In this document: positions 2,296 to 44,932 of the stretch, in pieces
How the letters are laid out: every line of letters begins with the position of its first letter
How positions within the stretch are numbered: the stretch's first letter is position 1
DNA from: Lepidodermella squamata
Taxonomy: Eukaryota > Animalia > Gastrotricha
Length of the DNA stretch: 64,000 nucleotides
NCBI GenBank assembly: GCA_047495785.1
Contig: JBLDXI010000023.1
Location: forward strand, 992,001 to 1,056,000
Direction: 5' to 3'
Notes under the pieces: generated by a model
What the model saw: the letters and a program-made list of their open reading frames with translations, nothing else
What the model was told of the DNA's origin: nothing
Database searches by the model: none
Program-made: the position numbers and the translations under genes

Positions 2296-2366
2296 TCAAG
2301 TTTTCCATCCTGGCCAGCCTCCGAGACTGGGACTTGACCCCAGCGGAAGTAGCGTATTACTGACAC

Positions 2367-2402
<36 letters not shown>

Positions 2403-5400
2403 TAGGAGCGGTGGTAGTAGCAGCAGTACTAGTAGTTGCGACACTAGTAGTAGTAGTAGTAGTAGTAGCAGTAGTAGTAGTAGTACCGGCACTAGGAGTA
2501 GTACTACTAGTGATTCCGACACCAGTCGTTGCTGGGGCATTGGTCGTTATCAAATAGAATGGCATCGGTTTAGCCGTAATAGCTCCAGCGGCTATTAGTG
2601 CGGATATAGCCTGAGTATTGCCGTATATTAGCGCTAAGTCAAGTGGGGAATAGCCTTCGTCATTCAGCACATTGAAATCAGCTCCAGCTGCAATCAACTC
2701 GGCCGCATTACTTGTGAATTCGCGAGCTGAGAGGATGTGCAGAAGCGTATCTCCCCTTCGGAGTTTTCGATTGATATCGTATCCCTTCTCGACTAGAAGC
2801 TTGGCCAAACCGTCAAAACTGCGGTATTTCGGAATAAAGGTCAGGCAAGTATCGTTGTTCTTGTTCTGGGAATTCACGTCCACTCCAGTGAAATTCGCAA
2901 ATCGCCTGACTCGGAAAAGAGGGAAGTCAGCATTCTTACAAGTCAACAAAAAGGCGTTATTCCCATCATTGTCTACAGCTGACAAATCCGCACCCGAATC
3001 CACGAGAAGATTGGCTACACTTTCCTTGCTTTCACTAGCTGCAATCATTAGCGGAGTTTTGCCAGTCGATTCTCGATCCTCTAGGCCAATGCCAGGGGTT
3101 GCGATTAATAATCTCGCTAGATTAACGTCATTTTCACGTGCAGCTAGATGTAGCAGTGTATAATTTGCATATCCGTATGAGGTTGAATTAATCCTGATTG
3201 CAGCATCGGCCCCTTTCGATATCAGATATTCATAGACTTGAACGCGATCTGGCGACTTCAAGTACATGGCTGCGACTACAAGTGGAGTCCTGCCTTCGGT
3301 ATCCTTGTCCGAAACAGAATTTCCAGCCTCCTCAACAGCGAATTTCACCACAGGGAGAGCAGGCATCTTCGAGATCCGGCAAGCCTCCGAAAAGATTCGA
3401 TCCAAGTTTTTGGAAGCTCCTTGCGAAACGAGAAATTTAACGATTTCAAGATTCGTTGCTGTAGCGTCGAGAATCGCCGTTCTCCCGTTCGCTTCCAAAT
3501 CGACATCTGCACCGAATTGCACGAGCAATTTAACCAAATCAAGGCGACCTTGTTCAGCTGCAAGCATTAGAGCAGATTTCTTAAATTTCGGGTGAATCGC
3601 ATTAGCATCGCCATCATTTTCGAGTAGAATCTGAAGCATTTCCAACGAAGCATTGGCAACACTTATAGCAGCAGCCACCACTGGGATCGGCTGGAAGAAA
3701 TCGCCGGTGTAGTAGTCGTTGTGCAGTTCTATTATGAGATCGTCCCCACGGGCTTGATTGAGTCGAATCATCTCGCGAACAGCAGTGATGTTCCCAGTAT
3801 TGACTTTTCCAGCAAATTCCTAGTGGGAACAATTTTGTAAATTCATAAATTTTTTAAACATTTTATTTAGAGGGTTTATCCTCAAGCTGGGGGTGCTCTA
3901 TTTTCTATTGTACTTTCACCCCGATATTTCGAATTGAAGGATCCGCAAATTTTAAGCAAATTTTAACATACCGAAATACGCCATTCATTCCGTACAGCTT
4001 TCACGGCTGATCGGGTAGTTGTGCTAGTCTTCGCTGCAGCAGTTGATCTTGCCTTGAAAATAGCTCCAACAATGGGCTGCAGACCATCATTAATTGCCTC
4101 GTCGCTTGGCGTTAATGGCCAAATTTTAGCGGAATTCATTGCCGCTGATGTCGTCGAAATTGTGGATGAACTCGCTGTTGTCGAAGTTACGGGACTGGTC
4201 GATGATCTCGTGACTAACTCACTGCCCAAGGCAGCACCTCGCCTTCTCAAATTTCCGATACTGAATTCGCCGTTAATCAATCTCGCGGCGTCCAAGGCAG
4301 TTTGGCCACTGTCATCAGTTGCATTTACATCAACGCCAAGATCTAGCAAGGCCACAAGAGTGTGCTCCCGATTTTTATCGCGAGCTGCGGACATGAGAGC
4401 GGTAATGCCCGAATAGCCCCTAAGGTTAAAATCGTAGCCTTTACTAGCCAGGTACTGCATAATTTCAACAAGATCCCAGTCGTTAACCTGCAAACCATTT
4501 CGCCACTGAAGGCGATAGTCGCAGGCTGCAGCTTTCGACCTTGAATTGACGTTATTTTGACCGATTTCGATGGCAAACTTGATAAATGTAAAAAGGGCCG
4601 AACCAGCACGATTAATTTGACAAGCTTGCAGCAACATATTATCACCTTCGTTATTACTCGCCAGCGCATCCGCTCCTAGGTCAATCAAATATTGGAGTAG
4701 ACCGAGGGAATACCCAGCCCTAGCCGCGATCAGCAAAGGCGTGTTGCCTCCATTATCCCTCGCATTAACATCCATCTTGAACTGTTCCACTAGTAATTTA
4801 GCAAAAGGCACGGGATCAATTGTGTCAACCGCGCAAAGTATGTGAAGGGCAGTTTGTCCGGCGGAGTTTCTGGAATCTGGTGATTCGAATGGCAGCAAGT
4901 AGTAAGCTAGCCGGAGATATTCTTGAGTGATTGGGCCGTCAAAAGCAACCATCAACGCCGTCTGGTTCTTTTGGTCTCGAACATCCGTCCTTGCTGCGTA
5001 CTTTTCAACGAGAAGTCTCGCTAGGTCCAGTCGGCCAACTCTTACTGCCCAGAGGAATGGAGTTTTTGAATCGTCCCTAGGACCGATATAATCCAAAAAA
5101 TTTTTTGCCTCGACATTCGCGCCATTTCGTAGTAGTAAGTCGACCATTTCGAAGCTCTGATTCGTTCGAATTGCATTTACCAAAGCCGGGGCACGGACTC
5201 CCGATCGGTATTTCGCCGTGGAATTTGCTTTACCAAGGCCTGAATTCAACATTTGACGAACAGTAGAGATTTGTCCCGACATAACAGCTTGGTTCAAAGC
5301 CTATATAAATGAACAGCTCAAAACGTCAAGACGCTAAAACATGTTCAAGATCTTACGTTGCCGTAATCGATCTCACTTGCGTGAATGATCACACCAGCGA

Positions 5401-5437
5401 AACATATTTCGAACAAAATTACGTAGATGGATATCAT
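2296..5437 (-). CDS. Secreted ankyrin-repeat protein, copy 1 (3 exons, 977 aa)
   Basis: Exons 5437-5357 (MISIYVILFEICFAGVIIHASEIDYGN, signal-peptide-like), 5300-3972 and 3819-2296. Both introns are GT-AG phase 0 (56 and 152 nt). Many TPLxxAA / GADxxxxD ankyrin motifs, an S/T-rich linker, a poly-Thr tail and C-terminal GGWPGWK. Confidence 0.9.
2366..2510. repeat. (TAG/ACT)n microsatellite encoding the poly-Thr tail of ankyrin copy 1
   Basis: Directly visible agt repeats, in frame with exon 3. Confidence 0.9.
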
Positions 5438-5509
5438 TTGACTTCCAGATGGATTTCTAGAGATTACAAAGAGAAATGTTAAAGAATGCTGAAATCAAAG
5501 AGACATTAA

Positions 5510-5800
5510 TTTTTTTCAGCTATCATCAAACAAAAAAAGCACGATTCTACTACAGCATTGCCGTGCGTGCTCAGTCAGGTGTGCCACGAGGTTTTTTCCA
5601 CCCTGAGGAATTGTATTATTCTACTTAAGTCTTAGGTAAATGGCAATCATTCGACATCAAAATCTTTAAAATATTTGAAGAATGCTCAAATCTTGGAGAC
5701 ACGAATGATTTTCAGCTATTATTAAGATATAAAACACGATACTACTATGGCATTCTTGCCGAGCGTGGTCATCCAGGTTTGCCAAAGAGGTTTTTTCATG
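5510..5800 (-). promoter_or_regulatory. Conserved upstream module of the ankyrin genes (about 100-190 bp; doubled in copies 1, 2 and 5, single in 3, 4 and 6)
   Basis: ttttcagcta...acgattctactacggcattgccgagcgtggtcatccaggtttgccaaagaggttttttccacc recurs at about 5515/5710, 13780/13965, 19730, 25665, 31705/31900 and 45000, just upstream of each ATG. Confidence 0.55.
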
Positions 5801-6849
5801 TGGGGATTCGTCTTTTTCTTCTACTCAATAACGTGACGCCATTGTGTGTTTAACTCTGCGTCGTGTTTACATGGTCACCCAATTTCGCATCATGGCCACT
5901 GTTTACTGAGGCAAAAGATTTTCTCAATTCTGACAACATTTCCCAACATTTTGAAATCTTCTGGTTTGAGCGGCCGAAGGAGGTGCTACATAGACCAAAT
6001 ATTTATGCACTTTACCTTCTTATTGATATTATTGTATATTTTGAAGGAGAGGAAAAGAGGTATATCACGCCACGCTGGGGTTCGCTGGGTGTACCCTTGG
6101 ACGAAGGAGGACAGTTCTGTTGATATTCGGTAGCTGAAATCGGGTGAGAGTGCAGTAAACAAATGGAGAACATGGCGTGATTACTCCGGTTGCAGCGTCC
6201 ATTAAAACGACCAGCTCCCGGTCAATGTCCATCAATCTGAAACAGCTCAGACCTGCAGGGAAGCCACCTACTCGCACTTCTACGAAATAAATGCTGCAAA
6301 ATTGAAATTAAAATGAAGCTCTATATATTATATTTTTATATTTCCTTATCCACGGTAAAAAAACGGTGAGCTGCCGTTGTTGTAATATTGTTTCGTTTTC
6401 CTTATGGTTGACTCAAATTTATGTCATCTCCAATTGTCCTATCCTTTTGTAACTGTCCTGCAATTATCTGTTTTCTTTCAAACTTAACTTTATCGAGCTG
6501 CCCTCTCTGGGTGTCATAGCTTTGAAATAAATAAAATAAATAAATTCATGGTCTATCGAATGTTAATTATTGTTCTAAATAGTTGCAGGTTATATCTGAG
6601 ATCCATGAATACTCTCATTGTTTGTCCTTGAAAATTGGCAACAATCGCCCTCAAAATAAAATAAAGTAAAATTTTGCAAATTATGCATGCATTTAACCCC
6701 TCGCTTCAGGATTAGGATTAGCAGTATTAGCAGGGCTGGAAAAAGTGTAAAACCTTCCGCTACCGCAAGTCGGAAGTTCTCCAAACTTCAAAATTTCCCC
6801 TCAGAATTTTTCATTCAAATTTTCATACGTTTGTATATTCGTTTATTTA

Positions 6850-7640: not shown

Positions 7641-7678
7641 TCACTATTTATGCTGATAAAAATTTGTTTTTATGTGTA

Positions 7679-10156: not shown

Positions 10157-10344
10157 TGGAAAATTTGAAACAGCCAGCATTAAACTGCCTTTCCTTAATT
10201 GACAGCTATCTTTGGTTATGAACATTATTTGTAGAATCGAATTTAATTAATTAATTAAATTCGATTCTACAAATAATGTTCATAACCAAAGATAGCTGTC
10301 AATTAAGGAAAGGCAGTTTAATGCTGGCTGTTTCAAATTTTCCA
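10157..10344. repeat. Perfect 188-bp palindrome (94-bp arms, no spacer)
   Basis: Centre at 10250/10251 (atttaattaa|ttaattaaat). Covers the last codons, stop and 3' UTR of ankyrin copy 2. Confidence 0.92.
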
Positions 10345-13300
10345 TCCTGGCCAGCCTCCAAGACTGGGACTTGTCCCCTGCGTAATACCAAGCGTAGTAA
10401 CGAGACGAGTAGTAGTTGTACTAGAAGTTCCGACGCTAGTCGTTGTTGTAGCAGTGGTCGTTATCAAGTAAAACGGCATCGGTTTAGCCGTAACAGCTCC
10501 AGCGGCTTCGAGTGCGGCTATAGCCCGTGTATTGCTGTATATCAGCGCTAAATCAAGCGGAGAATAGCCTTCGTCATTCAGCGAATTGAAATTAGCTCCA
10601 GCTTCAATCAACTCGTTCACATTTAGTGTGAATTCTCGAGCTGAGAGGATGTGCGGAAGAGTATCTCCCCTGCGTAGTTTTCGATTGATATTGTACCCTT
10701 TTTGAACTAGAAGCTTGGCAAAACCGTAAAAATTGCGGTATTTTGGAAAAACGGTCAGGCACGTGTCGTTGTTTTTGTTTTGAGAATTCACATCCAGTCC
10801 AGTCAAATTTGCAAAGACCCTAACTCGGGAAAGAGCGAAGTCGGCATTCTTACAAGTCAACAAAAAGGCGTTATTCCCATCAATGTCAACAGCCGATAAA
10901 TCCGCACCTGAAGCGATGAGGAGATCAGCTACACTTTCCTTACTTTCACTGGCTGCAATCATTAGCGGAGTTTTACCAGTTGATTCTCGTTCTTCTAGGC
11001 CAATGCCAGGAGTTGCGATCAATAATCTCGCCAGATCAACGTCATCTACACGTGCAGCTAGATGTAGCAATGTATAATTTGTGTATCCGTATGAGGTTGA
11101 ATTAATCCTGATTGTAACATCGGCCCCTTTCGATATCAGATATTCGTAGACTTGAACGCGATCTGACGACTTTAAGTACATGGCTGCGGCTACAAGTGGA
11201 GTCCTGCCTTCGGTATCCTTGTCCGAAACAGAATTTCCAGCGACCTCAATGGCGAATTTCACCATTTGGAGAGCAGGAATCTGGGAAATCCGACAGGCCT
11301 CTAGAAGGATATGATCCACGTTTTTAGAAGCTCCCTGTGAAACCAGGAATTTCACAATTTCAAGATTCGTTGCCGTAGCGTCGAGAATTGCCGTTCTTCC
11401 GTTCGCTTCTAAATCGACATCTGCACCGAATTGCACGAGCAATTTAACCAAATCAAGGCGACCTTGTTCAGCTGCAAGCATTAGGGCGGATTTCTTGAAT
11501 TTCGGGTGAATCGCATTTGCATCGCCGTCATTTTCGAGTAGAATCTGAAGCATTTCTAACGAAGCATTGGCAACACTTATAACAGCAGCCACCACTGGGA
11601 TAGGTTTGTAGTAAGTTAAGGTCCCGCAACCAACGTAATCGTCGTGCTCCTCCATTATAAGAGCGTCCCCGCGGGCTTGATTGAGTCGAATCATTTCGCG
11701 AACAGCAGTAACGTTCCCAGTTGCGACTTTTCCGGTAAATTCCTAGTGAAAACAAAATGTAATCACTGGCGAAATGGGTGCAAGGTGCAAGTAAAAAATG
11801 TGTTAAATATAATCAAGGGGTATTAAGTTTGAGAGAGGCCTTACTCGCCTAGTAAAGGAAAATGTATTAGAATCAATATTGGTGAGTATAAAATTTCAGG
11901 AGGAACTGCTCTACGCCGACTAGAAATCGTGAAATCATAGAAATTAAGATCAACAATTTTCTGGTGCAATTTGAACTGGCAAAGATGCAATCTCTACAAT
12001 CATTCCTCGGCTGGAAACCAAATTGACGCCTGGGAATTTTCGCGCTTCCAGAATTTACCAAAAACCAAATTAATTGACAGGAATGAGTTGATTCCGTTGA
12101 AGGGAATTTAAAAGGTTATATAACGACAGCTTTTAGAAAAAGGTTCCCCCATCGATAAAGTAAACTATTACATCATATTTTTATATTGCACATTTTCCGT
12201 TATGCTGTTGTATCAACTAATTGTAACCCACCGAGATGAGCGATTCATTCCGCTCAGCTTTCACGGCTGATCGGGTAATTGTGCTAGTCTTCATTGCAAC
12301 GGTTGATCTTGCCTTGAAAATAGCTCCAACAATCGGCTTCAGACCATCATTAATTGCCTCGTCGCTAGGTGTCAATGGCCAAATCTTAGCTGAAGCTATT
12401 GCTGCTGATGTCGTCGAAAATGTGGAAGAACTCGTTGTTGTCGAAGTTACTGGACTGGTCGATGATCTCTTGACTAACTCACTGCCCAAGGCAGCGCCTC
12501 GTCTTCTCAAATTGCCGATACTGAATTCATCTTTCCACATTGTTGCGACGTCCAAGGCAGTTTGGCCCATGTCATTTGTTGCATTTACATCAACGCCAAG
12601 ATCGAGCAAGGCCAGAAGAGTATGCTCCCGATCTTTTGACAATGCTGCTGCGGACATTAGTGCGTTATAGCCCGAATAACCCCTAAGGTCGAAATTGTAG
12701 CCTTTACTAGCCAGGTACTGTATAATTTCAACCAAGCCCAAGTCACCCACCTGCCAACTATTTCGCCATTGAAGGCGATAGTCGCAAGGTGCAAATTTCG
12801 ACCTTGAATTAATGTCATTTTGTCCGATTTCGATGGCAAACTTGATAAACGTTAAGTGGACCGGGCTTGAAGGATCAATTCGACAAGCTTGAAGCAACAT
12901 ATTATCGCCTTCGTCATTACGAGCCTGCCTTTCGGCTCCTTGGTCGATCAAGTATTGAAGTAAACCAAGGGAATAGCCAGCCCTAGCCGCGAACAGCAAA
13001 GGCGTGTTGCCTTCCTTGTCCCTCGCATTGACATCCATCTTGAACTGCTCGACCAGTAATTTAGCAAACGGCACGGGATCAGCAGTGTCAACCCGGCAAA
13101 GTAAGTGAAGGGCAGTTTGTCCGGCGGAGCTTCTGGAATCTGGCGATTCGAATGGCAGCAAGTAGTAAACAAGACGGAGATATTCTTGAGTGATTGGGCC
13201 GTCAAAAGCAACCATCAACGCTGTTTGGCCCTTCTGGTCTCGAACGTCAGTCCTTGCTCTGTACTTTTCAACTAGGAGTCTCACTAGGTCCAGCCGGCCA

Positions 13301-13710
13301 TTTCTTGCTGCCCAGAGAAATGGAGATTCCGAATCAGCCCTGGTATCGATCAACTCCTCGACATTTTGACCGCTTTGCTGTTTGTAGGAGCCATTCGCAT
13401 TTGCGCCATTTTGTAGTAGCAGTTCCACCATTTCGGAGCTCTGATTCGTTCGAATTGCATTGACTAAAGCCGGTGCTCGGTTTCCTGGTCGGTAAACTGC
13501 CGGGGAATTTGCGTTAACAAGCCCCAAATTCAAAAGTTGCTGAACTGAAGAGATTTGTCCCGACATAACAGCTTGGTTGAAAGCCTAAATCGATCACTTA
13601 AAACCTGAAGAAACTAAATATGGCCAAGGTCTTACGCTGTCGTAATCGATCGCCCTTGCGTGAATGATCGCACCCGTGAAACATATTTCGAACAAAATTA
13701 CGTTGATCAT
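10333..13710 (-). CDS. Secreted ankyrin-repeat protein, copy 2 (3 exons, 945 aa)
   Basis: Exons 13710-13636 (MINVILFEICFTGAIIHARAIDYDS), 13584-12232 and 11742-10333. Same phase-0 GT-AG introns as copy 1. Ends GGWPGWKI. Confidence 0.9.
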
Positions 13711-16415: not shown

Positions 16416-19400
16416 CTAGTCGCGGGTTGTAGTTCCGACGCTAGTTGTAGCAGTGGTCGTCAAATAGAACGGCATCGGTTTAGCCGTAATAGCTCCAGCG
16501 GCTCTTAGTGCGGCTATAGCCCGTGTATTGCTGTATATCAGCGCTAAATCAAGCGGAGAGTAGCCTTCGTCATTTAGCGCATTGAAATTAGCTCCAGCTG
16601 CAATCAACTCGGCCACATTAAGTGTGACTTCTCGAGCTGAGAGGATGTGCAGAAGAGTATCTCCCTTGCGCAGTTTTCGATTGATATCGTACCCCTTTTG
16701 AACCAGAAACTTGGCAAAACCATCAAAGTCGTAGTATTTCAAAATAAGGGTCAGACACGTGTCGTTGTTCTTGTTCTGAGAATTCACGTCCACTCCAGTG
16801 AAATTTGCAAATAGCCAGGTCAGCGTGAGAAAGATGCTGTCATTCTCACAAGCCAACAAGAACGCGTTATTCCCATCTTTGTCAACAGCCGATAAGTCCG
16901 CACCCGAATCGACGAGAAGATTGGCAACCTTTGCCGCGCTTTCACTAGCTGCAATCATTAGTGGAGTTTTACCAGTTGATTCTCGTTCCTCTAGGCCAAT
17001 GCCAGGAGTCGCGATTAAAAATCTCGCCAGGTCTACGTCATTTTCACGTGCAGCTAGATGTAGCAATGTATAATTTGTGGATCGGTATTTGGTGAAAATA
17101 ATCCTGATTTTAACATCGGCCCCTTTCGATATCAGATATTCAAAGACTTGAACACGATCTGGCGACTTCAAGTAGACGGCTGCGATAACAAGTGGAGTCC
17201 TGCCTTCAGTATCCTTGTCCGAAACAGAATTTCCAGCCTCCTCAATAGCGAATTTCACCACAGGGAGAGCAGGAATCTTGGAAATCCGACATGCCTCTAG
17301 AAGGATATGATCCACGTTTTTAGAAGCTCCCTGTGAAACCAGGAATTTCACAATTTCAAGATTCGTTGCCGTAGCGTCGAGAATTGCCGTTCTTCCGTTC
17401 GCTTCTAAATCGACATCTGCTCCGAATCGCACGAGCAATTTAACCAGATCAATGCGACCTTGATCAGCTGCAAGCATTAGAGCAGATTTCTTGAACTTCG
17501 GGTGAATCGCATTTGCATCGCCGTCATTTTCGAGTAGAATCTGAAGCATTTCTAACGAAGCATTGGCAACACTTATAGCAGCAGCCACCACTGGGATCAC
17601 TGGGAAGTACTCGAAATACATGTGACCGTTCGACTGTTCGATTATAAGAGCGTCCCCGCGGGCTTGATTGAGTCGAATCATTTCACGAACAGCAGTGATG
17701 TTTCCAGCTTTGACTTTTTCAGCAAATTCCTAGCGAAGACACTATTTACACTTTCTTTTTTTATGCGCGTTACGCGAGAGTGGAAAAGATTGTGCCAAGC
17801 TATCACCGCAACATAGAGAAAAAATGACCAGAGTAAGCACTCAAGCTAAAATTGTGATCTGCGTTATTATAGCAGTGCTTTCTCAAAACGGATATCTCCG
17901 TTTTCCACCAAATTTTGCATGCCTATAGAACGCGAGCTGCTCTTTCACGTGGTAAAAGATTTGAGGTAGGCAATTGCTGCTCAGTCTTGATCTCATCAAA
18001 ATAAATGAAACCATGGTGAAAACGCGGTTTTTGTATCGCAACAACGGTTGGGTTGCCCACCTCAAATCTTATACCTCGTGAAAGAGCAGCTCGCGTTCTA
18101 TAGGCATGCAAATTTGGTGGAAAACGGAGATATCCTTTTTCAGACTAAGCCCCCCCCCCCCCCCCCCCCAGCTAATGTAACTGCCTTTTCATAACAACTA
18201 ATTGTAACCTACCGAGATAAACGATTCACTCCGCACAGCTTTCACAGCTGATCGAGTAGTTGTGCTGGTCTTCATTGCAACGGTTGATCTTGCCTTGAAA
18301 ATCGCTCCAACAATCGGCTGCAGACCATCATTGATTGCCTCGTCGCTAGGCGTTAAAGGCCACATTTTAGCGGAATTTCTTGCTGCTGATGTCGTCGAAA
18401 TTGTGGATGAACTCGTTGTTGTCGAAGTTACGGAACTGGTCGATGATCTCGTGACTAACTCACGGCCCAAGGCAGCACCTCGTCTTCTCAAATTGCCGAT
18501 ACTGAATTCATCTTTCAATATTTTCGATATGTCCAAAGCAGTTTCGCCTCTGTCATTTGTTGCGTTTACATCAACACCCAGATCGAGCAAGGCCACAAGA
18601 GTTCGCTCCCGATTCTTAGACGCTGCTGCAGACATGAGTGCAGCATAGCCCGCATGGGACCTAAGGTTGAAATCGTAGCCTTTACTAGCCAGATACTGCA
18701 TTATTTCAACAAGACCCATGTCGCTCACCTGCCCCCCACTTCGCCATTGAAGGCGATAGTCGCAGGCTGCAGCTTTCGACCTTGAATTGACGTCATTCTT
18801 TCCGATTTCGATTGCCAACTTGATAAAAGCTAAGTGGCCCAGCTCAGTATGATCAATTTGACAAGCTTGAAGCAACATATTATCACCTTCGTTATTACTC
18901 GCCAGCGCATCCGCTCCTAGGTCAATCAAATATTGGAGTAGACCGAGGGAATACCCAGTCCTAGCCGCGATCAGCAAAGGCGTGTTGCCTTCCTTGTCCC
19001 TCGCATTGACATCCATTTTGAACTGCTGGACCAGTAATTTAGCAAACGGCACGGGATCAGCAGTGTCAACCCGGCAAAGTAAGTGAAGGGCAGTTTGTCC
19101 GGCGGAGCTTCTGGAATCTGGCGATTCGAATGGCAGCAAGTAGTAAACAAGACGGAGATATTCTTGAGTGATTGGACCGTTAAAGGCAACCATCAACGCC
19201 GTCTGGTTCTTCTGGTCTCGAGCATCCGTCTTTGCTGCGTAATTTTCAACTAGGAGTCTCACTAGGTCCAGCCGGCCATTTCTTGCTGCCCAGAGAAATG
19301 GAGATTCTGAATCAGTTTCAATATTTAGGCCGTTTTGTAGTAGTAATTCGATCATTTCGTAGCTCTGATTTGTTCGAATTGCATTAACCAAAGCCGAGGG

Positions 19401-19667
19401 TCGGCTTTCTAATTGGTAAATTGTCGTGGAATTTGCGTTGACAAGGCCAGAATTTAACATTTGCCGCACGGTAGAAATTTGGCCCGACATAACAGCTTGG
19501 TTGAAAGCCTAAATCAGACACTAAGCACTTGTAGCCTGAAAGAAGCCAAAAAATGTGTGAGGTCTTACGCTGTCGTAATCGACCGCACTGTCGTAATTGC
19601 TCGTACTTACGTGAATGATCGCACCCGTGAAACATATTTCGAACAAAATTATGTAAATGGATATCAT
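16416..19667 (-). CDS. Secreted ankyrin-repeat protein, copy 3 (3 exons, 902 aa)
   Basis: Exons 19667-19569 (MISIYIILFEICFTGAIIHVSTSNYDSAVDYDS), 19508-18213 and 17729-16416. Short tail without the WPGW motif. Confidence 0.88.
17882..18143. mobile_element. MITE in intron 2 of ankyrin copy 3
   Basis: About 90-bp inverted arms ggatatctccgttttccaccaaa...gcatgcctatagaacgcgagctgctctttcacg and its reverse complement. Absent from the other copies. Confidence 0.8.
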
Positions 19668-22694: not shown

Positions 22695-25602
22695 CTAGTT
22701 GGAGGTTGTAGTTCTGACACTGGTCGTTGTTGTAGCAGTTGTCGTTATCAAATACAACGGCATCGGTTTAGCCGTAACAGCTCCAGCGGCTCTTAGTGCG
22801 GATATAGCCTGAGTATTGCCGTACATCAGCGCTAAATCAAGCGGAGAATAGCCTTCGTCATTGAGCGTATTAAAATTAGCTCCTGCTTCAATCAACTCTC
22901 CAATATCCATATCGATTTGTCGAGCTGAGAGGAAGTGCAGAAGAGTATCTCCCTTGCGAAGTTTTCGGTTGATATCGTACCCTTTTTGAACTAGAAGCTT
23001 GGCAAAAATGTTAAACTCGCCGTATTTCCAATATCCAATAAGGGTCAGACACGTGTCGTTGTTCTTGCTCTGAGAATTCACGTCCACTCCTTTCAAATTT
23101 GCAATTTGCAAGGCCCGCGCGAGAACAGTGTTGTCACTCTCACAAGTCAGCAAAAATGTGTTTTTCCCATCATTGTCAACAGCCGACAAATCCGCACCCG
23201 AAGCGACGAGAAGATCGACAACATTCACGGCGCATTCCCTACCTGCAATCATTAGCGGAGTTTTACCAGTTGATTCTCGATCCTCTAGGCTAATGCCAGG
23301 AGTTGCGATTAATAATCTCGCCAGATCGACGTTGTTTCCACGTGCAGCTAGATGTAGCAATGTATAATTTGTGTACCAGTTTGTGGTTGAATTAATCCTG
23401 ACTTTAACGTCGGCCCCATTTGATATCAGATATCCATAGACTTGAACGCGATCTGACGACGTCAAGTAGACGGCTGCGACTTCAAGCGGAGTCCTGCCTT
23501 CGGTATCCTTGTCAGAAACAGAATTTCCAGCCTCCTCAATAGCGAATTTCACCATAGGGAGAGCAGGAATCGCAGAGATCCGGCAAGCCTCGAAAATGAT
23601 TCGATCCAAGTTTTTGGAAGCTCCTTGCGAAACCAGGAATTTAACGATCTCAAGATTCTTTGCCGTAGCGTCGAGAATCGCCGTTCTCCCGTTCGCTTCC
23701 AAATCGACATCTGCACCGAATTGCACGAGCAATTTAACCAGATCAAGGCGACCTTGTTCAGCTGCAAGCATTAGAGCAGATTTCTTAAATTTCGGGTGAA
23801 TCGCATTAGCATCGCCGTCATTTTCGAGTAGAATCTGAAGCATTTCCAACGAAGCATTGGCAACTTTTAAAGCAGCAGCCACCACTGGGATCGGTTGGAA
23901 GTAGGTCAAGGTTTCGCAAGACACGTAGTCGTCGTGCTGTTCTATGATTAGATCATCCCCGCGGGCTTGATTGAGTCGAATCATTTCGCGAACAGCAGTT
24001 ATGTTCCCAGCTTTGACCTTTCCAGCAAATGCCTGGTGAAAACAGAATTATTAATCCTTTTTATGCCCTACAAGAATGCTGCGTTGTGCCAAGCTTTCCT
24101 CACAGGAAAACCGACAGTGAACAGCTTCACATTGTTTGAATCAGTATTTATATACGTATCCTCGAGCTAGGGGGTGGAATATTAACCCACCGAGATAAGC
24201 GATTCATTCAGCACAGCTTTCACAGCTGATCGTGTAGTAATGCTGGTCTTCATTGCAGCCGTTGATCTTGCCTTGAAAATAGCTCCAACAATCGGCTCCA
24301 GACCATCATTAATTGCCTCGTCGCTAGGCGTCAAAGGCCACATTTTAGGGGAATTTCTTGCTGCTGATGTCGTCGAAAAGGTGGAAGAACTCGTTGTTGT
24401 CGAAGTTACGGGACTGGTCGATGATCTATTGACTAACTCACGGCCCAAGGCAGCACCTCGTCTTCTCAAATTGCCGATGTTGATTTTATGGCCCCACATT
24501 GTTGAGATGTCCAAGGCAGTTTCGCCCCTGACGTTTGTTGCGTTCACATCAACGCCAATATCGAGCAAGGTCACGAGAGTAGTCCCATGATTATGAAACG
24601 CTGCGGTCATGAGTGCGGTATAGCCCGAATAACCCCTAAGGTCGAAGTCGTAGCCTTTACTAGCCAGATACTGCAAAATTTCAGGAAGATACCAGTCGCT
24701 CCCCCACCTTAGAAGGGGATAGTCGCAGGATGTAAATTTAGACCTTGAATTGACGTCATTCTGTCCGATTTCAATGGCAAACTTGATAAATTTTAAATGG
24801 CTATATGCAGTACGATCAATTTGACAAGCTTGAAGCAACATATTATCAATTTCGTCATTACTCGCCAGCGCATCCGCTCCCAGGTCAATCAAATATTGAA
24901 GTAAATCGAGGGAATAGCCAGCCCTTGCCGCAAACAGCAAGGGCGTGTTGCCTTCCTTGTCCCTCGCATTGACATCCATTTTGAACTGTTCGACCAGCAA
25001 TTTTGCAAAAGGCACGGGATCAACAGTGTTAACCCGGGAAAGTATGTGAAGGGCAGTTTGTCCGGCGGAATTCCTGGAATCTGGCGATTCGAATGGTAAC
25101 AAGTAGTAAACAAGCCGGAGGTATTCTTGAGTGATTGGGCCGTCAAAGGCAACCATCAGCGCCGTTTGGCCCTTCGGGTCTCGAACATCCGTCCTTGCTC
25201 CGTACTTTTCCACGAGGAGTCTCGCTAGGTCCAGTCGGCCATTCCTTGCAGCCCAGAGAAATGGAGTTTTTGAATCAGCCTCAATATTTGCGCCGTTTTG
25301 TAGTAGTAATTCGACCATTTCGTAGCTCTGATTTGTTCGAATTGCATTAACCAAAGCCGGGGCTCGGCTTCTTAGCCAGTAATATGCCGTGGAATTTGCA
25401 TTAACAAGGCCTGAATTCAACATTTGCCGAACAGTAGAAATTTGTCCTGACATAACAGCTTGGTTGAAAACCTAAATCAACCACTTAGCCTGAAGAGGCC
25501 AAAACATGTTCAAGATCTTACGTTGTCGTAATCGATCGCCCTTGCATGAATGATCGCACTCGTGAAACATATTTGGAACAAAATTACGTAGATGGATATC
25601 AT
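22695..25602 (-). CDS. Secreted ankyrin-repeat protein, copy 4 (3 exons, 899 aa)
   Basis: Exons 25602-25522 (MISIYVILFQICFTSAIIHARAIDYDN), 25471-24191 and 24032-22695. Short tail. Confidence 0.88.
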
Positions 25603-28638: not shown

Positions 28639-28717
28639 CCTAGCGGAATCCCTAGCGGAATCCCTAGCGGAATCCCTAGCGGAATCCCTAGCGGAATCCC
28701 TAGCGGAATCCCTAGCG
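28639..28717. repeat. 12-bp tandem repeat (cctagcggaatc) x 6.5
   Basis: Directly visible. Lies in the 3' UTR of ankyrin copy 5. Confidence 0.95.
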
Positions 28718-28728
28718 TACGTCCAACA

Positions 28729-31658
28729 CTAGTCGGGGGTTGTGGTCGTCAAATAAAACGGCATCGGTTTAGCCGTAATAGCTCCAGCGGCTTTTAGTGC
28801 GGCTATAGCCCGAGTATTGCCGTATATCAGCGCCAAATCAAGCGGAGCATAGCCTTCGTCATTCAGCGCATTTATATTAGCTCCGGCTTCAATCAACTCG
28901 ATCAAATCACTCGAGATTTCTCGGGCTGAGAGGATGTGCAGAAGAGTATCTCCCCTGCGGAGCTTTCGATTGATAACGTACCCCTTGTCAATTAGAAATT
29001 TGGCAAAACCATCGAAGTCGAAGTATTTCGAAATAAGGGTCAGACACGTGTCGTTGTTCTTGTTCTGAGAATTCACGTCCACTCCAGTGAAATTTGCAAA
29101 TAGCCAGGTCATCGTGAGAAAGATGCCGTCATTCTGACAAGCCAACAAGAACGCGTTATTCCCATCTTTGTCAACAGCCGATAAGTCCGCACCCGAATCG
29201 ACGAGAAGATTGGCAACATTCTCCGCGCTTTCACTAGCTGCAATCATTAACGGAGTTTTACCTGTTGATTCACGTTCTTCTAGGCCGATGTTAGCAGTTT
29301 TGATCAGCAATCTCGTCAGATCAACGTCATCTACACGAGCAGCTTGATGCAGTAATGTATAATTTGTGTATCTGTACGAGGTTGAATTAATCCTGATTGC
29401 AGCATCGGCCCCTTTCGATATCAGATATTCGTAGACTTGAACGCGATCTGGCGATTTCAAATAAAGTGCTGCGACTGCAAGTGGCGTCCTGCCTTCGGTA
29501 TCCTTGTCAGAAACAGAATTCCCAGCCTCCTCAATAGCGAATTTTACCACAGGGAGAGCAGGCATCTTAGAAATCCGGCAAGCCTCGAAAATTATTTGAT
29601 CCAAGTTTTTCGAAGCTCCTTGCGAAACGAGAAATTTAACGATTTCAAGATTCGTTGCCGTAGCGTCGAGAATCGCCGTTCTTCCGTTCGCTTCTAAATC
29701 GACATCTGCACCGAATTGCACGAGCAATTGGACTAGATCAAGGCGACCTTGTTCTGCGGCAAGCATTAGAGCGGATTTCTTGAACCCTGGATGAATCGCA
29801 TTTGCATCGCCATAATTTTCGAGTAGAATCTGTAGCATTTCCAACGAAGCATTGGCAACACTTAATGCAGCAGCCACCACTGGGATCGGTTGGTCGTAAA
29901 TTAAGGTCTCGCAACCTACGTAATCGTCGTGCTGTTCTATTATGAGATCGTCCCCGCGGGCTTGATTGAGCCGAATCATTTCGCGAACAGCAGTGATGTT
30001 CCCGGCTTTGACTTTTCCAGCAAATTCCTAGTGGAAAGAATAATTAATCTTGTTCGTGCCCTACGAGAGTGCTGTTGTGCCAAACTTTCCTCAGGTGTTC
30101 TGTTGTACTTTTTTGCCCGAATTTCAAACCAACGAGGTGGTTCCAACCCGGGTGGAGATAAGCTTCAAACTCAATTGTAACCTACCGAGATAAGCGATTC
30201 ACTCCGCACAGCTTTCACAGCTGATCGAGTAGTTGTGCTGGTCTTCATTGCAACGGTTGATCTTGCCTTGAAAATAGCTCCAACAATCGGCTGCAGACCA
30301 TCATTGATTGCCTCGTCGCTAGGCGTTAAAGGCCACATTTTAGCGGAATTTCTTGCTGCTGATGTCGTCGAAATTGCGGAAGAACTCGTTGTTGTCGAAG
30401 TTACGGGACTGGTCGATGATCTCTTGACTAACTCACGGCCCAAGGCAGCACCTCGTCTTCTCAAACTGCCGATACTGAATTCATCTTCCCACATTGTCGC
30501 GACGTCCAAGGCAGTTTCGCCGTCGTCATTCGTTGCATTTACATCAACTCCCAAATCGAGCAAGGCCACAAGAGTTTGCTGCCGATCTTTTGACGCTGCT
30601 GAAGACATAAGAGCGGTATAGCCCGCATCTTTAGCCCGAATGTTGAAATCGTAGCCTTTACTGGCTAAGTACTGCATAATTTCAACAAGAGCCCAGTCGC
30701 TCACCTGCCAACCATTTCGCCATTGAAGGCGATAGTCGCAGGCTGCAGCTTTCGACCTTGAATTAACGTCATTCTGTCCGATTTCAATGGCAAACTTGAT
30801 AAACGTTAAAAGGCCCGACCCAGGACGATTAATTTGACAAGCTTGAAGCAGCATATTATCACTTTGGTTATTTCGAGCCTGCGCATCCGCTCCTTGGTCG
30901 ATCAAATATTGGAGTAGACCGATGGAATACCCAGTCCTAGCCGCGATCAGCAAAGGCGTGTTGTCTTCCTTGTCTCTCGCATTAACATCCATTTTGAACT
31001 GTTCGACCAGTAATTTAGCAAAAGGCACGGGATCAATAGTGTCAACCGCGCAAAGTAAGTGAAGGGCCGTTTGTCCGGCGGAGTTTCTGGAATCCGGCGA
31101 TTCAAGTGGTAACAAGTAGTAAGCTAGTCGGAGATGTTCTTGAGTGATTGGGCCGTCAAAGGCAACCATCAACGCCGACTGGTTCTTCTGGTCTCGAAAG
31201 TCCGTCCTTGCTGCGTACTTTTCAACGAGAAGTCTCGCTAGGTCGAGCCGGCCATTTCTTGCAGCCCAGAGAAATGGAGTCTTTGAATCGTCTCTAGCGT
31301 TGAAGTTTTGGCCGCTTTGCTGTTTGTTGAAGCCATCGACATTTGCACCATTTCGTAGTAGTAATTCGACCATTTCGTAGCTCTGATTTGCTCGAATCGC
31401 ATTCACTAAAGCCGGGGCTCGGCTTCCTGGTTGGTAAATTGCCGTGGAATTTGCGTTCACAAGGCCCGAATTCAACATTTGCTTAACTGAAGAGATTTGG
31501 CCCGACATAACAGCTTGGTTGAAAGCCTAAATGAGCAACTTGAAACCTGAAGTAGCCAAACATGTTCAAGGTCTTACGCTGTCGTAATCGATCGCCCTTG
31601 CGTGAATGATTGCACCCAAGAAACATATTTCGAGCAAAAATATGTAGATGGTTATCAT
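28729..31658 (-). CDS. Secreted ankyrin-repeat protein, copy 5 (3 exons, 906 aa)
   Basis: Exons 31658-31578 (MITIYIFLLEICFLGAIIHARAIDYDS), 31526-30186 and 30027-28729. Short tail. Confidence 0.88.
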
Positions 31659-39699: not shown

Positions 39700-41428
39700 T
39701 TGGGGAGACCACGAGGTCAACGTGTGTCGCGCATTTGTTAAATTTCTACGAGTCACGGGCCGCAAAGCCACGAAATTCAATTTGCGCGTATATATCGAAT
39801 TTATCGACAGCATTTATCGCGCTCGATTGCCGGGTCGCTCTGCGACTTCCATCGTCGCCAAGGCTCGTTCTCTCCTTGAGGACGATTAAAAAACCTGGTG
39901 TTGAGTTGAGAAGGTGAACTACTGCGCGATTCTGAAAGAAATAAATTGACGACATTGGAAAACAATCGATTTTTTTATTCAAATTTCTGAACTTTTCAAA
40001 CCATCCTCACACAATCACACCTTGAAACTAGCGAAAAAGCTGTTCAAAATGCTGGCCGCCATGCGCAATGCATGATCGAACGCGCTCCTGCCAATTTCTC
40101 CGCACATTAGCCAGCGCTTCCTGCGTAACCTCTCCACAGGCGACTCGGATTCTTTCCTTCAGTTCATCCATACTGTCGATTCGCCCCCGATAAACTTTGT
40201 CTTTGAGGTGACCCCATAGGTAAAAATCGAGTGGCGTTAGATCCGGGGAACGAGGAGGCCACGGTACCGGACCTCCGCGCCCAACCCACCGGTGCGGAAA
40301 TCGTCGATCCAACCATTTGCGCACCTTGAGAGACCAGTGTGATGGGGCGCCGTCCTGCATAAACATGCTTCTAGGACCCACACGTTCTCGAATCAGCGGC
40401 CACAGCCATTGAACGAGCATCTTCAAATATTTCGCGCCATTAACACTGCCCTCGAAAAAATAGGGACCAATTATCGTGTCGCGAAATATTCCACACCAAA
40501 CGTCGACGCGTTCTGCACCCTGGTCTTGATTATCAATTATCTCATGTGGGTTGGATGTCGACCAGTGACGGAAGTTTTGCACGTCCACCTTACCACTTAA
40601 GCGAAATTTAGCCTCATCGCCAACCAGTATGTCCCACACGAAACCGATTTCAGATTCACATTGAGCGTCAAACCACGCCGAAAAATATAATCGCAGTTCG
40701 AAATCGGCGGGATTAAGTGATTGCACATGGCGCAATTTATAAGGGTGAAATCCAATTTTTTCAAAATTAATCTGATTCTTTCAGGGCTATAATTCAGCTC
40801 ACGACTGGCATCGCGAAGTGACTTGTTGGGATGTTGCGTAAAGTAATTGATAACCACATTTTCGACCTGATTCGTTGGAAGTTGATTTCTAGGCAAATCC
40901 GTCATCACCCCTAATGCAGAAAAAATAATTCCGATTAATCACCTGCGTGAGCTAAGTAATAAATTATTACCTGTGTTTACAAGGCGCGTGTAGTTTCTTT
41001 TAACCGTGTTAACAGATGGCTTCGGTCTAGTAGGATGTTTAGATCGAAATAATCGTGCCGCCAGACTCGCATTCTTTTTCTCGTGATATAGCAGCGCCAT
41101 TTCCGCGCGTTCGACAGGTGAGTAGTAAGAACCAGGCATTTTTTTTCAGAGAAAATTTTGCACTGACAGATGTGACTAACGACAATTATTCGTGCACCTG
41201 TTAAATTGTTTCGCATTCGTTGGGGCTCAACATGACCTAGGTCGCGGCGGCACTGTTAATTATTACGCGCTCAATCACTGCCAAGTTTTTTTACATGTAA
41301 ACATGTCTAATCTGATTCTACAGGATATCGACATCGGGCTGTGCAAGTACTCGCTATACAAACGTAATGCAGTACTACACGCAAATATTGCTAAGAAAGA
41401 TTATTGCCACTATAAAAAAGTCACCCTG
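39700..41428 (-). mobile_element. DD41D Tc1/mariner DNA transposon
   Basis: TIR-like end TA-CAGGGTGACTTTTTT at 41428 (minus strand), abutting a MITE half. The other TIR was not found, so the left boundary is approximate. Confidence 0.7.
40028..41139 (-). CDS. Tc1/mariner transposase, DD41D type, one intron and one frameshift
   Basis: HTH exon 41139-40971 and a 60-nt GT-AG intron at 40970-40911. Frameshift in an A run near 40755. Catalytic GDEAKF, QDGAPSH and SPDLTPLD, with 41 residues between the last two Asp. Confidence 0.85.
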
Positions 41429-41783: not shown

Positions 41784-44700
41784 TCAAGATGGACTATTCC
41801 ATCCTGGCCAGCTCCGGAGATTTGGGCTGGACCTTAGCAGCATTCCAACCGTACTTCTGACACCAGTTGTGGTTGTCGCAGTTGTGGTTGTCGCAGTGGT
41901 AGTCGTCAAATACAACGGCATCGGTTTAGCCGTAACAGCTCCAGCGGCTCTTAGCGCGGCTATAGCCCGAGTATTGCCGTATATCAACGCTAAATCAAGC
42001 GGAGCATAGCCTTCGTCATTCAGCGCATTAATATTAGCTCCAGCTTGAATCAACTCGCCAACATTTTTAGTGGTTTCTCGAGCTGAGAGTTTATGTAGTA
42101 CAGTATCTCCCCTGCGGAGTTTTCGATTGATATCGTACCCTTTTTGAACTAGAAACCTGGCAAAACCGTTGAACTCGTAGTATTTCCAAATAAGGGTCAG
42201 ACACGTGTCGTCGTTTTTGTTCTGAGAATTCACGTCCACTCCAGTGAAATTTGCAAATCGTCTGGCCCGCGTGAGAGACATGTCGTCATTCTTACAAGTC
42301 AACAAAAAGGCGTTATTCCCATCATTGTCAACAGCCGATACATCTGCACCATTATGGACGAGAATATCGACCACATTTTCCGAGGTTACACTAGCTGCAA
42401 TCATTAACGGAGTTTTACCAGTTGATTCTCGTTCTTCTAGGTCGATGCCGGCAGTTTTGATCAGTAATCTCGCCAGATCAACGTCATCATCACGTGCAGC
42501 AAGATGTAGCAATGTATAATTTGTGTAGTGGTATTCGGTTGAATTAATCCTGATTGTAACATCGGCCCCATTTGATATCAGATATTCATAGGCTTGAGCG
42601 CGATCTGACGACTTCAAGTACATGGCTGCGACTACAAGTGGGGTCCTGCCTTCGGTATCCTTGTCAGAAACAGAATTTCCAGCCTCCTCAATAGCGAATT
42701 TTACTACTGGGAGAGCAGGCATCTTGGAGATCCGACAGGCCTCCAAAAGGATTTGATCTACGTGTTTAGAAGCTCCCTGTGAAATCAGGAATTTAACGAT
42801 CTCAAGGTTCGTTGCCGTCGCGTCGAGAATCGCCGTTCTCCCGTTCGCTTCCAAATCGGCATCTGCACCGAATTGCACGAGTAATTCAACCAGATCAAGG
42901 CGATTTTGTTCAGCTGCGAGCATTAAAGCAGATTTCTTGAACTCTGGATGAATCGCATTCGCATCGCCATAATTTTCGAGTAGAATCTGAAGCATTTCCA
43001 ACGAAGCATTAGCAACACTTAAAGCAGCAATCACCATTGGGATCGGTTGGTCGTAAATTAAGGTCTCACAACCTACGTAATCGTCGTGCTGTTCAATTAT
43101 GAGATCGTCCCCGCGGGCTTGATTGAGTCGAATCATTTCGCGAACAGCAGTGATGTTCCCAGCTTTGACATGTCCTGCAAATCTCTGAAGATGCATAATA
43201 ATTAGGCCAAATAATTATTTTCAGTCCTACGCTAATAAAGGTGGAAAGGGCTGGTTGATGGTACTAAACGCTCTACTACGGTGGATCTCTGGTTAACTGC
43301 TCGAAATGGTTGAAATCAGTGTTCGCAGTTGGGTCCTCGAGTTAGGGGGTGTCCCGTTGCAACTTTTGCCCCATTTGTAGACAAACTGGTTCCCCTCGTC
43401 GATAAAGTCAACTTTGAATTTTAACCCACCGAGATAAGCGATTCATTCCGCACAGCTTTAACGACTGATCGAGTAGTAATGCTGGTCTTCATTGCAGCAG
43501 TTGATCTTGCCTTGAAAATAGCTCCAACAATGGGCTGCAGTCCATCATTTATTGCCTCGTCGCTGGGCGTCAATGGCCACATTTTAGCGGAAGTTATTGC
43601 TGCTGGTGTCGTCGAAATTGTGGATGAACCCCAAAATGTTGGTGGCGGACCGATGCGCCAGTTCGATGATCTCATGGCTAACTCACTGCCCAAGGCAGCA
43701 CCCCGTCTTCTCAAATTGCCGATGCTGAGTTCATCTTTCCACATTGTCGCGATGTCCAAGGCAGTTTCGCCCCGGTCATTTGTTGCATTGACATCAACAC
43801 CCAGATCGAGCAAGGCCGCAAGAGTATGCTCCCGATTATTGGACGCTGCTGCGGACATGAGAGCGGTATAGCCCGCATCTTTAGCCCGAATGTTGAAATC
43901 GTAGCCTTTACTGGCTAAGTACTGCATAATTTCAACAAGATCCCAGTCGTTGACCTGCGAACCACTTCTCATTTGGAGGCGATAGTCGCAGGCAGAAAAA
44001 TCAGACCTTGAATTGACGTCATTCTGTCCGATTTCGATTGCAAACTTGATAAATGCTAAATGACCCAACTCAGTACGATCAATCTGACAAGCTTGCAGCA
44101 ACATATTACCCCCTTCGTAATTTCTCGCCTGCGCATCGGCTCCTTGGTCGATCAAGTATTGAAGTAAATCGATGGAATACCCCGTCCTAGCCGCGATCAG
44201 CAAAGGCGTGTTGTCTTCCTTGTCTTTCGCATTGACATCCATTTTGAATTGTTCCACGAGTAATTTAGCGAAAGGCACGGGATCACTAGTGTAAACCCGA
44301 CAAAGAATATGTAGGGCAGTTTGTCCAAGCCAGTTTCTGGAATCAGGCGATTCGAATGGCAGCAAGTAGTAAGCTAACCGAAGATATTCTTGAGTGACTG
44401 GGCCGTCAAAGGCAACCATCAACGCCGTTCTGTTCTCCTGGTCTCGAACATCCGTCCTTGCTGCGTAATTTTCAACTAGCAGTCTCGCTAGGTCAAGCCG
44501 GCCACCTCTTGCTGCCCAGAGAAACGGAGTTTTTGAATCAGCGCTAACATCCATGCGCTCCACAACATTTTTACCGATTCGATACTCGGAGTAGCCATAA
44601 CTCCTAGCCTCAACATTGGCGCCATTTCGTAGTAGTAATTCGACCATTTCGTAGCTCTGATTTGTTCGAATTGCATTCACTAAAGCCGGGGCTCGGTTTC

Positions 44701-44932
44701 TTGGTCGGTAAACTGCCGTGGAATTTGCGTTAGCAAGGCCCGAATTTAACATTTGCCGAACGGTTGAAATTTGGCCTGACATAACAGCTTGGTTGAAAGC
44801 CTAAATGAACCACTTAAAACCTGAAGAAGCTATACACGTTCAAGCTCTTACGCTGTCGTAATCGATCGCCCTTGCGTAAATGATCGCAACCGCGGAACAT
44901 ATTTCGAACAAAATTACGTAAAGGGATATCAT
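41784..44932 (-). CDS. Secreted ankyrin-repeat protein, copy 6 (3 exons, 950 aa)
   Basis: Exons 44932-44852 (MISLYVILFEICSAVAIIYARAIDYDS), 44800-43430 and 43184-41784. Ends RSWPGWNSPS. Confidence 0.9.

Follow-up and report, generated by a model that had tools for sequence, protein, structure and literature searches.

The tandem array of six genes on the minus strand of the window, the 64-kb stretch of Lepidodermella squamata DNA analysed here, probably encodes two-armed, soluble, secreted ankyrin proteins that form a lineage-specific family expanded by tandem duplication, a reading to which we assign a probability of about 0.7. The gene models are intact and under purifying selection, and their predicted splicing is seen in an RNA-like data set. 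Entry of the products into the secretory pathway is a prediction, well supported by the comparison of leaders across divergent paralogues. The leader would direct the growing chain into the ER and be cleaved behind a small residue at about position 20 (IIHA/RA), and the product would be a soluble protein that leaves the cell or is stored in granules of the secretory pathway. The mature protein would present two rigid ankyrin surfaces for binding, borne on flexible stalks with O-glycosylation; its most likely job would be to bind or cross-link proteins outside the cell through its two arms, and the family would have diversified by tandem duplication.

Organisation of the gene array

The preliminary description of this DNA had read twelve ORFs as six genes, each with a leader exon of 75-99 nt ending at a GTAAG donor and with its two large ORFs joined in phase 0. 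Script-built gene models bear this out in every copy. The 12 minus-strand ORFs (416-491 aa) fall into six pairs that give six stop-free models, with spliced products of 899-977 aa and reading frames of ~2.7-2.9 kb that are open in 6/6 copies, splice sites intact. Each gene comprises three exons separated by GT-AG introns, all in phase 0. Exon 1 measures 81, 75, 99, 81, 81 and 81 nt in copies 1 to 6 and is followed by a GTAAGA donor in each; intron 1 spans 50-60 nt and carries AG at its 3' end; exon 2, of 1281-1371 nt and a multiple of 3 in all six, terminates in ...ATCTCG/GT (the slash marking the exon end); and, after an intron 2 of 152-489 nt, exon 3 begins with EF, AF or RF preceding AGKV. 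The exons of each gene match three protein modules, namely the leader, arm 1 with its linker, and arm 2 with its tail.

In copy 1, exon 1 (5357..5437) encodes the leader MISIYVILFEICFAGVIIHA followed by SEIDYGN, exon 2 (3972..5300) a 10-repeat ankyrin arm, a Ser/Thr linker and a two-helix element, and exon 3 (2296..3819) a 12-repeat ankyrin arm, a long Thr-rich tail and the stop codon; the model reproduces the junctions 5357/5300 and 3972/3819 offered earlier as examples. The leader exon, exon 2 and exon 3 lie at 13636..13710, 12232..13584 and 10333..11742 in copy 2, at 19569..19667, 18213..19508 and 16416..17729 in copy 3, whose 99-nt exon 1 contains a 6-codon internal duplication, and at 25522..25602, 24191..25471 and 22695..24032 in copy 4. 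They occupy 31578..31658, 30186..31526 and 28729..30027 in copy 5 and 44852..44932, 43430..44800 and 41784..43184 in copy 6, where the first Ser/Thr linker, in exon 2, is partly degenerate. Position 44932, taken previously as the array end, is exactly the copy 6 ATG, and a seventh array member is located 0.8 kb to the left of the window. A LINE and a transposase fragment lie inside the array, and a pepsin-like protease exon adjoins copy 6.

Structure of the two ankyrin arms

Exon 2 specifies a 10-repeat ankyrin arm, a Ser/Thr-rich linker and a small two-helix element, and exon 3 a 12-repeat ankyrin arm and a Thr-rich tail. Pfam profiles Ank, Ank_2, Ank_3, Ank_4 and Ank_5 matched exon 2 and exon 3 alike in copies 1 and 6, with E-values of 1e-18 to 1e-43, and no Pfam family other than Ank reached its curated cut-off in either exon. 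AlphaFold2 models of copy 4 display 10 helix pairs in arm 1 (pLDDT 81) and 12 helix pairs in arm 2 (pLDDT 88), with the Ser/Thr linker after arm 1 modelled as disordered. The Ank profiles and the stacked helix-pair repeats of ~33 residues in the predicted models agree with the ankyrin-repeat identity first assigned to these proteins. The arms start directly after the leader and each solenoid is N-capped, and the best Foldseek matches for the arms are ankyrin-B/R, DARPins and espin. Conserved cysteine pairs, C216/C249 in arm 1 and C297/C328 in arm 2, are invariant in 15 and 19 paralogues and were considered as disulphides; the repeat geometry puts the paired residues at opposite ends of neighbouring helices, and no disulphide claim is therefore made.

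Ser/Thr tracts, C-terminus and membrane anchors

The products had also been described as glycoproteins bearing NxS/T sequons and mucin-like Ser/Thr tracts and devoid of a TM helix, and these features fared unequally. Mucin-like tracts (at least 60% Ser+Thr over 20 aa) are present, extending over 20-70 residues after arm 1 in five copies and after arm 2 in four. Tracts of this kind are characteristic of extracellular stalks that carry O-glycans, and it is from them, and not from the sequons, that the term glycoprotein derives, O-glycosylation being putative. The sequons are real and positionally conserved, with 9 columns occupied in at least 5/6 copies, but their count is at chance level (about 10 per protein versus 7-10 +/- 2.5 in shuffled sequence), so that they constitute no evidence by themselves. 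Sequon asparagines are kept slightly more often than other asparagines (0.71 versus 0.56); neither enrichment nor retention was convincingly above chance, and both were dropped as evidence.

A Kyte-Doolittle scan finds no membrane span outside the leader, the nearest approach being a weak ankyrin-helix stretch with a maximum of 1.8, and no KDEL, GPI-like tail or retention or sorting signal was recognisable in the products. The lack of a further membrane span, a GPI-type tail or KDEL is the reason why a soluble product is proposed. Frame changes within the Thr tract have removed the C-terminal GWPGWK motif from three copies, which indicates that the tail is not under tight constraint. The evidence for secretion would serve equally for proteins that stay in the secretory pathway, as contents or scaffold of a gland granule, a lysosome-like or an extrusive organelle, and are not free binders. 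Repetitive, Thr-rich proteins encoded by large tandem families are characteristic gland products, and the protease exon beside copy 6 offers a weak hint in the same direction; the lack of a recognisable retention or sorting signal speaks against such residence, which we consider unlikely.

The leader exon

The leaders in the window read MISIYVILFEICFTGAIIHA followed by RAIDYDS, or close variants of it, with a best 8-residue Kyte-Doolittle mean of 2.7-3.05 within the first 20 residues in 6/6 copies. A hydrophobic core directly after the start codon is also found in 10 divergent paralogues, and in paralogues at 39-62% identity the mini-exon (21-35 codons), an intron of 46-55 nt and the in-phase join are all preserved. 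Their leaders are divergent in sequence but classical in form: MKLIFLLFVEICFMGTLIAA (followed by RQ), MNSILIICFLGIYFACLIIDA (RK), MGGSIRLFFLGVCLTGAVINA (KP) and MRPILFLCTVSVAFA (DIDFNN). The leader-exon DNA of this subfamily was found solely ahead of ankyrin genes of the same family. The Met of 'MSGQIS', at the start of the exon 2 ORF, gives way to Ile, Val, Glu or Ala in the paralogues and thus cannot be the family start codon, so that translation must begin in exon 1. Upstream of the exon-1 ATG, 5/6 window copies present an in-frame stop and no other in-frame ATG, while copy 4 has one additional in-frame ATG, 18 codons upstream.

The window copies are without a basic N-region and carry Glu in the hydrophobic core (Gln in copy 4), features that weaken the signal-peptide prediction for these six genes in particular. 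Paralogue leaders possess the basic N-region (MK.., MR..), and the core Glu is replaced in them by Gly, His or Gln. Charges flanking the leader are neutral or positive on the N-side and net negative on the C-side, a distribution that, by the positive-inside rule, would favour moving the C-terminal portion across the membrane.

The hydrophobic stretch of the window leaders, at 17-18 residues (ISIYVILFEICFTGAII), is long for a signal peptide, and cleavage is only predicted; both points would suit an uncleaved signal anchor, which would make the products type II membrane proteins, their two arms in the lumen or outside and tethered to the membrane of the producing cell. Every leader, however, ends in a small residue at -1, Ala in nearly all, position -3 being aliphatic or small, and several paralogue leaders have short cores of 10-12 residues (e.g. 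MRPILFLCTVSVAFA), typical of cleaved signals, which makes permanent anchoring quite unlikely. Ankyrin repeats in eukaryotes are treated as a marker of cytosolic or nuclear proteins, being almost always found there, and the products might accordingly be thought ordinary cytosolic ankyrin proteins, the leader being unused or tethering the N-terminus to a membrane while the arms stay cytosolic. The window leaders, with no basic N-region and an acidic residue inside, and the chance-level sequons would accord with this location. It is nevertheless very improbable in the light of the RNA-like contigs in which exons 1 and 2 are spliced together, the internal Met not kept in paralogues, the long poly-Thr stalks, which are atypical of cytosolic proteins, and the basic N-termini of paralogue leaders, which by the same rule would leave the N-terminus in the cytosol with the rest translocated.

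Transcription, splicing and selection

Coverage by the public run X1, presumed to be RNA from its behaviour, falls on exons only, with none on spacer or promoter DNA, whereas the DNA run X2 covers both deeply. X1 contigs carry both the exon 1-2 and the exon 2-3 joints in the predicted letters, as the early gene structure implied. Matching the copy 4 models, one contig reads DYDS/ALNQA, passing from exon 1 to exon 2 with the 50-nt intron gone, and another SLIS/EFAG, passing from exon 2 to exon 3 with the 158-nt intron gone; neither spliced joint was found in X2. With 1-4 mismatches close to the joints, these contigs represent paralogues or alleles and are not demonstrably the six copies in the window.

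The six copies are 77-84% identical in protein and their exons about 85% identical, and no alignment is left between copies in intron 2 and the spacers. The dN/dS ratio is about 0.35 overall and 0.32-0.38 in both arms. Signs of diversifying change are weak and patchy, the overall dN/dS of 0.35 giving no clear signal, and a hypervariable binding face was rejected, variation being patchy and distributed over hairpin tips, some helix-2 starts, the linker and the leader. That the array consists of functionless, decaying duplicates, as the loss of GWPGWK from three copies, the degenerate first linker of copy 6 and the LINE and transposase fragment might suggest, is barely credible given six open frames with intact splice sites, a dN/dS of about 0.35 where introns and spacers have diverged beyond alignment, and RNA-like coverage confined to exons.

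Extent of the family

The family comprises at least 40-60 loci in the 121-Mb genome, with paralogues reaching down to 39% identity, and the window holds six of the seven tandem members of one subfamily. The assembly contains no COX1; an RNA polymerase I subunit exon reaches 46-48% identity at most in named animals, with no rotifer in the 120 best hits, and 82% in a metagenome relative, so that a rotifer affinity is not supported. The lineage-specific status initially proposed is supported, and the sequence searches returned no close relatives. A profile search with arm 1 against 1.84 billion representatives gave 396,423 hits, a list saturated by giant multi-ankyrin proteins in which no full-length family match could be recognised and which says nothing about orthologues. 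A word-based search with arm 2, in a database without this genome's own proteins, gave generic matches at 26-31% identity (Haliotis, Adineta, many bacteria). The 33 loci found in JGI metagenomes with the arm-1 alignment are all 23-42% identical and none is a family member, and the ESM Atlas contained only generic, mostly bacterial, ankyrin clusters. Full-text literature searches turned up no account of ankyrin proteins with a signal peptide that form a family in an animal.

Comparison with known ankyrin and solenoid proteins

The best structural matches of the arms are canonical ankyrins (Foldseek E about 1e-13, TM 0.5-0.6, identity about 20-28%), whose membrane-binding domain of 24 repeats in ankyrin-R/B/G likewise forms a long ankyrin solenoid without interruption. 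Canonical ankyrins act as adaptors in the cytosol, contain ZU5-UPA-death domains and have no signal peptide. The array proteins differ from them in having two separate arms, a leader exon, mucin-like linkers and a Thr-rich end, and no ZU5-UPA-death domains follow the repeats, Pfam detecting only Ank families.

The latrotoxins of widow spiders contain a large pore-forming part at the N-terminus and are not known to have a classical signal peptide. Neither the wing/body (pore-forming) nor the C-terminal domains of latrotoxins were detected by Pfam in the array proteins, and nothing suggests toxicity. Latrotoxins act outside the producing cell, contain ~20-22 ankyrin repeats and belong to an expanded gene family (PMC8630228, PMC4058007). 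They share with the array proteins an animal origin, ankyrin repeats, family expansion and action outside the producer, which is predicted here.

The ankyrin effectors of intracellular bacteria and the ankyrin proteins of large DNA viruses are likewise exported by their producer, as predicted for the array proteins, and bacterial ankyrin proteins give generic search scores of a similar level. Bacterial effectors, however, are injected and act in the host cytosol, and the array genes differ from theirs in their spliceosomal introns, eukaryotic signal-peptide exon, host-like composition and dozens of copies. DARPins, which rank with the best fold matches, demonstrate that ankyrin repeats can serve as a scaffold for extracellular binding, but they are engineered proteins of 4-6 repeats and not natural genes. 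The LRR variable lymphocyte receptors and Toll-like ectodomains offer a functional analogy only, in their solenoid, signal peptide, Thr-rich stalk and multigene arrays; their fold is different, and neither somatic assembly nor a membrane anchor nor strong hypervariability is seen in the array proteins. The roles first put forward for the array proteins, in immune recognition, as a toxin or in mucus, are conjectural. By this analogy it might be speculated, as a minority possibility, that the array belongs to a germline-encoded repertoire of extracellular two-armed binders of microbes, prey or self surfaces, resembling LRR-based repertoires and forming a natural counterpart of DARPins.

Should the secreted, two-armed reading be correct, the family would place a natural ankyrin fold outside the cell or in the secretory pathway, a rare location, with dozens of transcribed and selected genes. 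When genes are called from ORFs or in prokaryote style the leader goes unseen, and such families are consequently missed in poorly annotated invertebrate genomes. A gene family would here have been re-addressed simply by gaining a signal-peptide mini-exon, and its members would provide natural extracellular ankyrin scaffolds to compare with engineered DARPins.

Structure of the six tandem genes

On the minus strand of the window, 12 ORFs of 416-491 aa are arranged in six pairs. Gene models, scripted after the DNA at the ORF-pair boundaries had been read, resolved every pair into the same three-exon gene (6/6). Exon 1 starts with an ATG, measures 81, 75, 99, 81, 81 and 81 nt in copies 1 to 6, respectively, and ends at a GTAAGA donor, followed by an intron 1 of 50-60 nt. 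Exon 2 comprises 1281-1371 nt, a multiple of three in all six copies, with a 3' end reading ATCTCG/GT, while intron 2 spans 152-489 nt and exon 3 extends to the stop codon. All exon joins are in phase 0, and the six products, of 899-977 aa, contain no internal stop. In five of the six copies the exon-1 ATG is preceded by an in-frame stop, with no additional in-frame ATG there; copy 4 has one such additional ATG, 18 codons upstream. The window can be identified as eukaryotic from its animal receptor genes, a LINE element and the short GT-AG introns. The preliminary description had proposed that the 12 ORFs represent six spliced genes with a leader exon, the two large ORFs joining in phase 0 in every copy. 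The models agree, yielding the same copy 1 junctions (5357/5300 and 3972/3819) and placing the ATG of copy 6 exactly at the proposed end of the array, 44932. The tandem ankyrin-gene observation is confirmed and the three-exon structure is secure.

Intron 2 of copy 3 (~17800-18150) contains ~20 consecutive G and a long inverted repeat that is nearly perfect, features resembling an insertion of the foldback or MITE type. A 12-nt tandem repeat, reading ARDS six to seven times in one frame, lies immediately 3' of the copy 5 stop (~28600-28730). The LINE, of 56-59% GC, is located between copies 5 and 6 (34340-38781, minus strand). It encodes a reverse transcriptase (PF00078) as well as an APE-type endonuclease (PF14529); its ORF2 is broken up into two frames that overlap, and 37207-38781 (minus strand) is occupied by an ORF1-like frame. 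The enlarged spacer holding the LINE also contains an ORF (40028-40735, minus strand) with a weak DDE_3 transposase match, slightly under the Pfam cut-off, which is probably a transposon fragment. Directly upstream of copy 6 is a pepsin-like aspartyl protease exon (45534-46654, minus strand; PF00026, E 4.5e-21). A 555-aa ORF on the plus strand (55680-57347) combines an ANF_receptor ligand-binding domain with numerous sequons and a clear predicted signal peptide of its own, and resembles a portion of a gene for a family C GPCR or of a glutamate-receptor-like gene.

Transcription and splicing

Array sequence is present in two public runs, here termed X1 and X2. X2 behaves as genomic DNA, with a depth of ~100 over spacers and 500-1900 over the gene, a difference implying many paralogues. 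X1 is taken as RNA by a guess from its behaviour, the data in both runs being contigs and not reads: its coverage is confined to exons, and depth is zero over 22000-22563 and the promoter bin 25666-25806, where X2 reaches 100-740. X1 contigs omit exactly the two predicted introns. Letter-by-letter checking revealed both joints at the expected spliced length, exon 1/2 as DYDS/ALNQA with 4 mismatches to copy 4, and exon 2/3 as SLIS/EFAG with 1 mismatch. Because of these mismatches, the junction contigs that show the predicted joins derive from paralogues or alleles. X2 contigs contain no spliced joints, so those of X1 do not reflect retrocopies in the DNA.

Architecture of the encoded proteins

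Pfam matches in the large exons 2 and 3 are to ankyrin families only. In AlphaFold2 models computed from paralogue alignments (A1 and A2), exon 2 forms 10 helix pairs (pLDDT 81; arm 1), then a Ser/Thr tract, which is disordered, and a small element of two helices. Exon 3 forms 12 helix pairs bearing two long β-hairpin fingers (pLDDT 88; arm 2), then a disordered Thr-rich tail. Both arms are confidently predicted to be solenoids, and the top Foldseek matches of the modelled arms are ankyrin-B/R, DARPins and espin. A similar N-terminal cap is observed on both arms (AFNQAVMSGQISTVRQML and EFAGKVKAGNITAVREMI) and each is followed by a Ser/Thr tract, so that the gene resembles a duplicated arm-plus-stalk module, the border between the two copies coinciding exactly with intron 2. 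Consistent with the earlier reading that no transmembrane helix is evident, a Kyte-Doolittle scan of the models identified no membrane-span-like segment outside the leader, the sole other stretch at or above 1.6 (maximum 1.8) being an ankyrin helix. Neither KDEL nor a hydrophobic C-terminal GPI-type signal was found in the six products. The C-terminal motif SPSLGGWPGWK is retained in copies 1, 2 and 6, and is out of frame in copies 3-5 as a result of length changes in the Thr tract.

Leader peptides and possible glycosylation

The leaders in the window, MISIYVILFEICFTGAIIHA followed by RAIDYDS and variants, are hydrophobic with a small residue at the end. They have no basic N-region, and their core contains a Glu, replaced by Gln in copy 4. 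Taken alone, these six would not pass as textbook signals, and leaders were therefore compared across the family. In ten of the 18 paralogues fetched, a script located the leader exon in the equivalent position, joined in phase across an intron of 46-55 nt. The paralogue leaders differ in sequence and have a classical form, as in MKLIFLLFVEICFMGTLIAA followed by RQ, MNSILIICFLGIYFACLIIDA by RK, MGGSIRLFFLGVCLTGAVINA by KP and MKSIFICFLTCFIAPITCF by KN, and in MRPILFLCTVSVAFA followed by DIDFNN, from a member at only 39% identity. The core Glu is replaced by Gly, His or Gln in other family members. The Met of MSGQIS, the start of the exon 2 ORF, is Ile, Val, Glu or Ala in other members, and the family-wide translation start is thus not there. 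Subfamily leader DNA was found only before family members. Charges flanking the leader are neutral or positive on the N-side and net acidic on the C-side, which, by the positive-inside rule, suggests that the C-terminal part is translocated. In combination with the poly-Thr stalks and the paralogue leaders, these charges favour entry into the secretory pathway over other readings, at a probability of roughly three in four. As a prediction, the original proposal of secreted proteins is well supported by the comparison across the family; we infer leader cleavage and product release.

Conserved sequons had also been put forward as a sign of glycoproteins, an argument that the counts do not support, since the ~10 NxS/T sequons per protein match the 7-10 ± 2.5 of shuffled sequence. 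Sequon Asn are retained slightly more often in divergent paralogues (0.71) than other Asn (0.56), and several are structural Asn of the ankyrin repeat consensus. With sequons at chance level, it is the mucin-like tracts that would make these products candidate glycoproteins.

Divergence between copies

The copies share 77-84% protein identity, with a dN/dS of 0.32-0.38, alike in both arms. BLASTN similarity between copies is restricted to exons and ~400 bp upstream, with no alignment over the 3-kb spacers or intron 2. This upstream region (~5530-5920 for copy 1), unlike the spacers, is 77-83% conserved, and it is doubled before copy 1. Exon 1 shows a synonymous divergence of 0.10, one third of the value in the arms. 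These two features suggest gene conversion at the 5' end, or else a promoter module that has been conserved. Copies differ in a patchy manner, and pN/pS reaches at least 1 only in windows within the leader and first linker, at two hairpins and at two helix-2 starts of arm 2. Any sign of a variable binding face is weak.

The family in the genome and beyond

A six-frame search with exon 2 across the 121-Mb assembly (G000) gave 62 matches at E<1e-20, among them a large cluster at C23:402-640 kb and, 0.8 kb to the left of the window, a seventh member of the array. The whole array has a near-identical twin on contig C54 (G000:C54:77000-138000), which is 99% identical in exons, as measured at copy 4 exon 2, and 94% in spacers, with indels; it is probably the other haplotype, the alternative being a very recent segmental duplication. 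The two-arm layout is retained in 18 fetched paralogues. At one paralogue locus, L001 (G000:C23:534000-538600), a single tblastn segment spans arm 1 to arm 2 with no break; intron 2 may be lost there, or short and open in frame.

Outside this genome only generic ankyrin similarity (23-42% identity) was found, with no family match; giant ankyrin proteins saturated the profile search, so that it carries no information on relatives. An RNA polymerase I subunit exon displays at most 46-48% identity to any named animal and 82% to a metagenome protein; its best 120 matches include no rotifer, giving no support to a rotifer affiliation. Full-text literature searching turned up no account of animal ankyrin proteins with signal peptides that form a family. 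The present family, expanded in tandem arrays, would represent ankyrin-repeat proteins whose predicted destination has become the secretory pathway.
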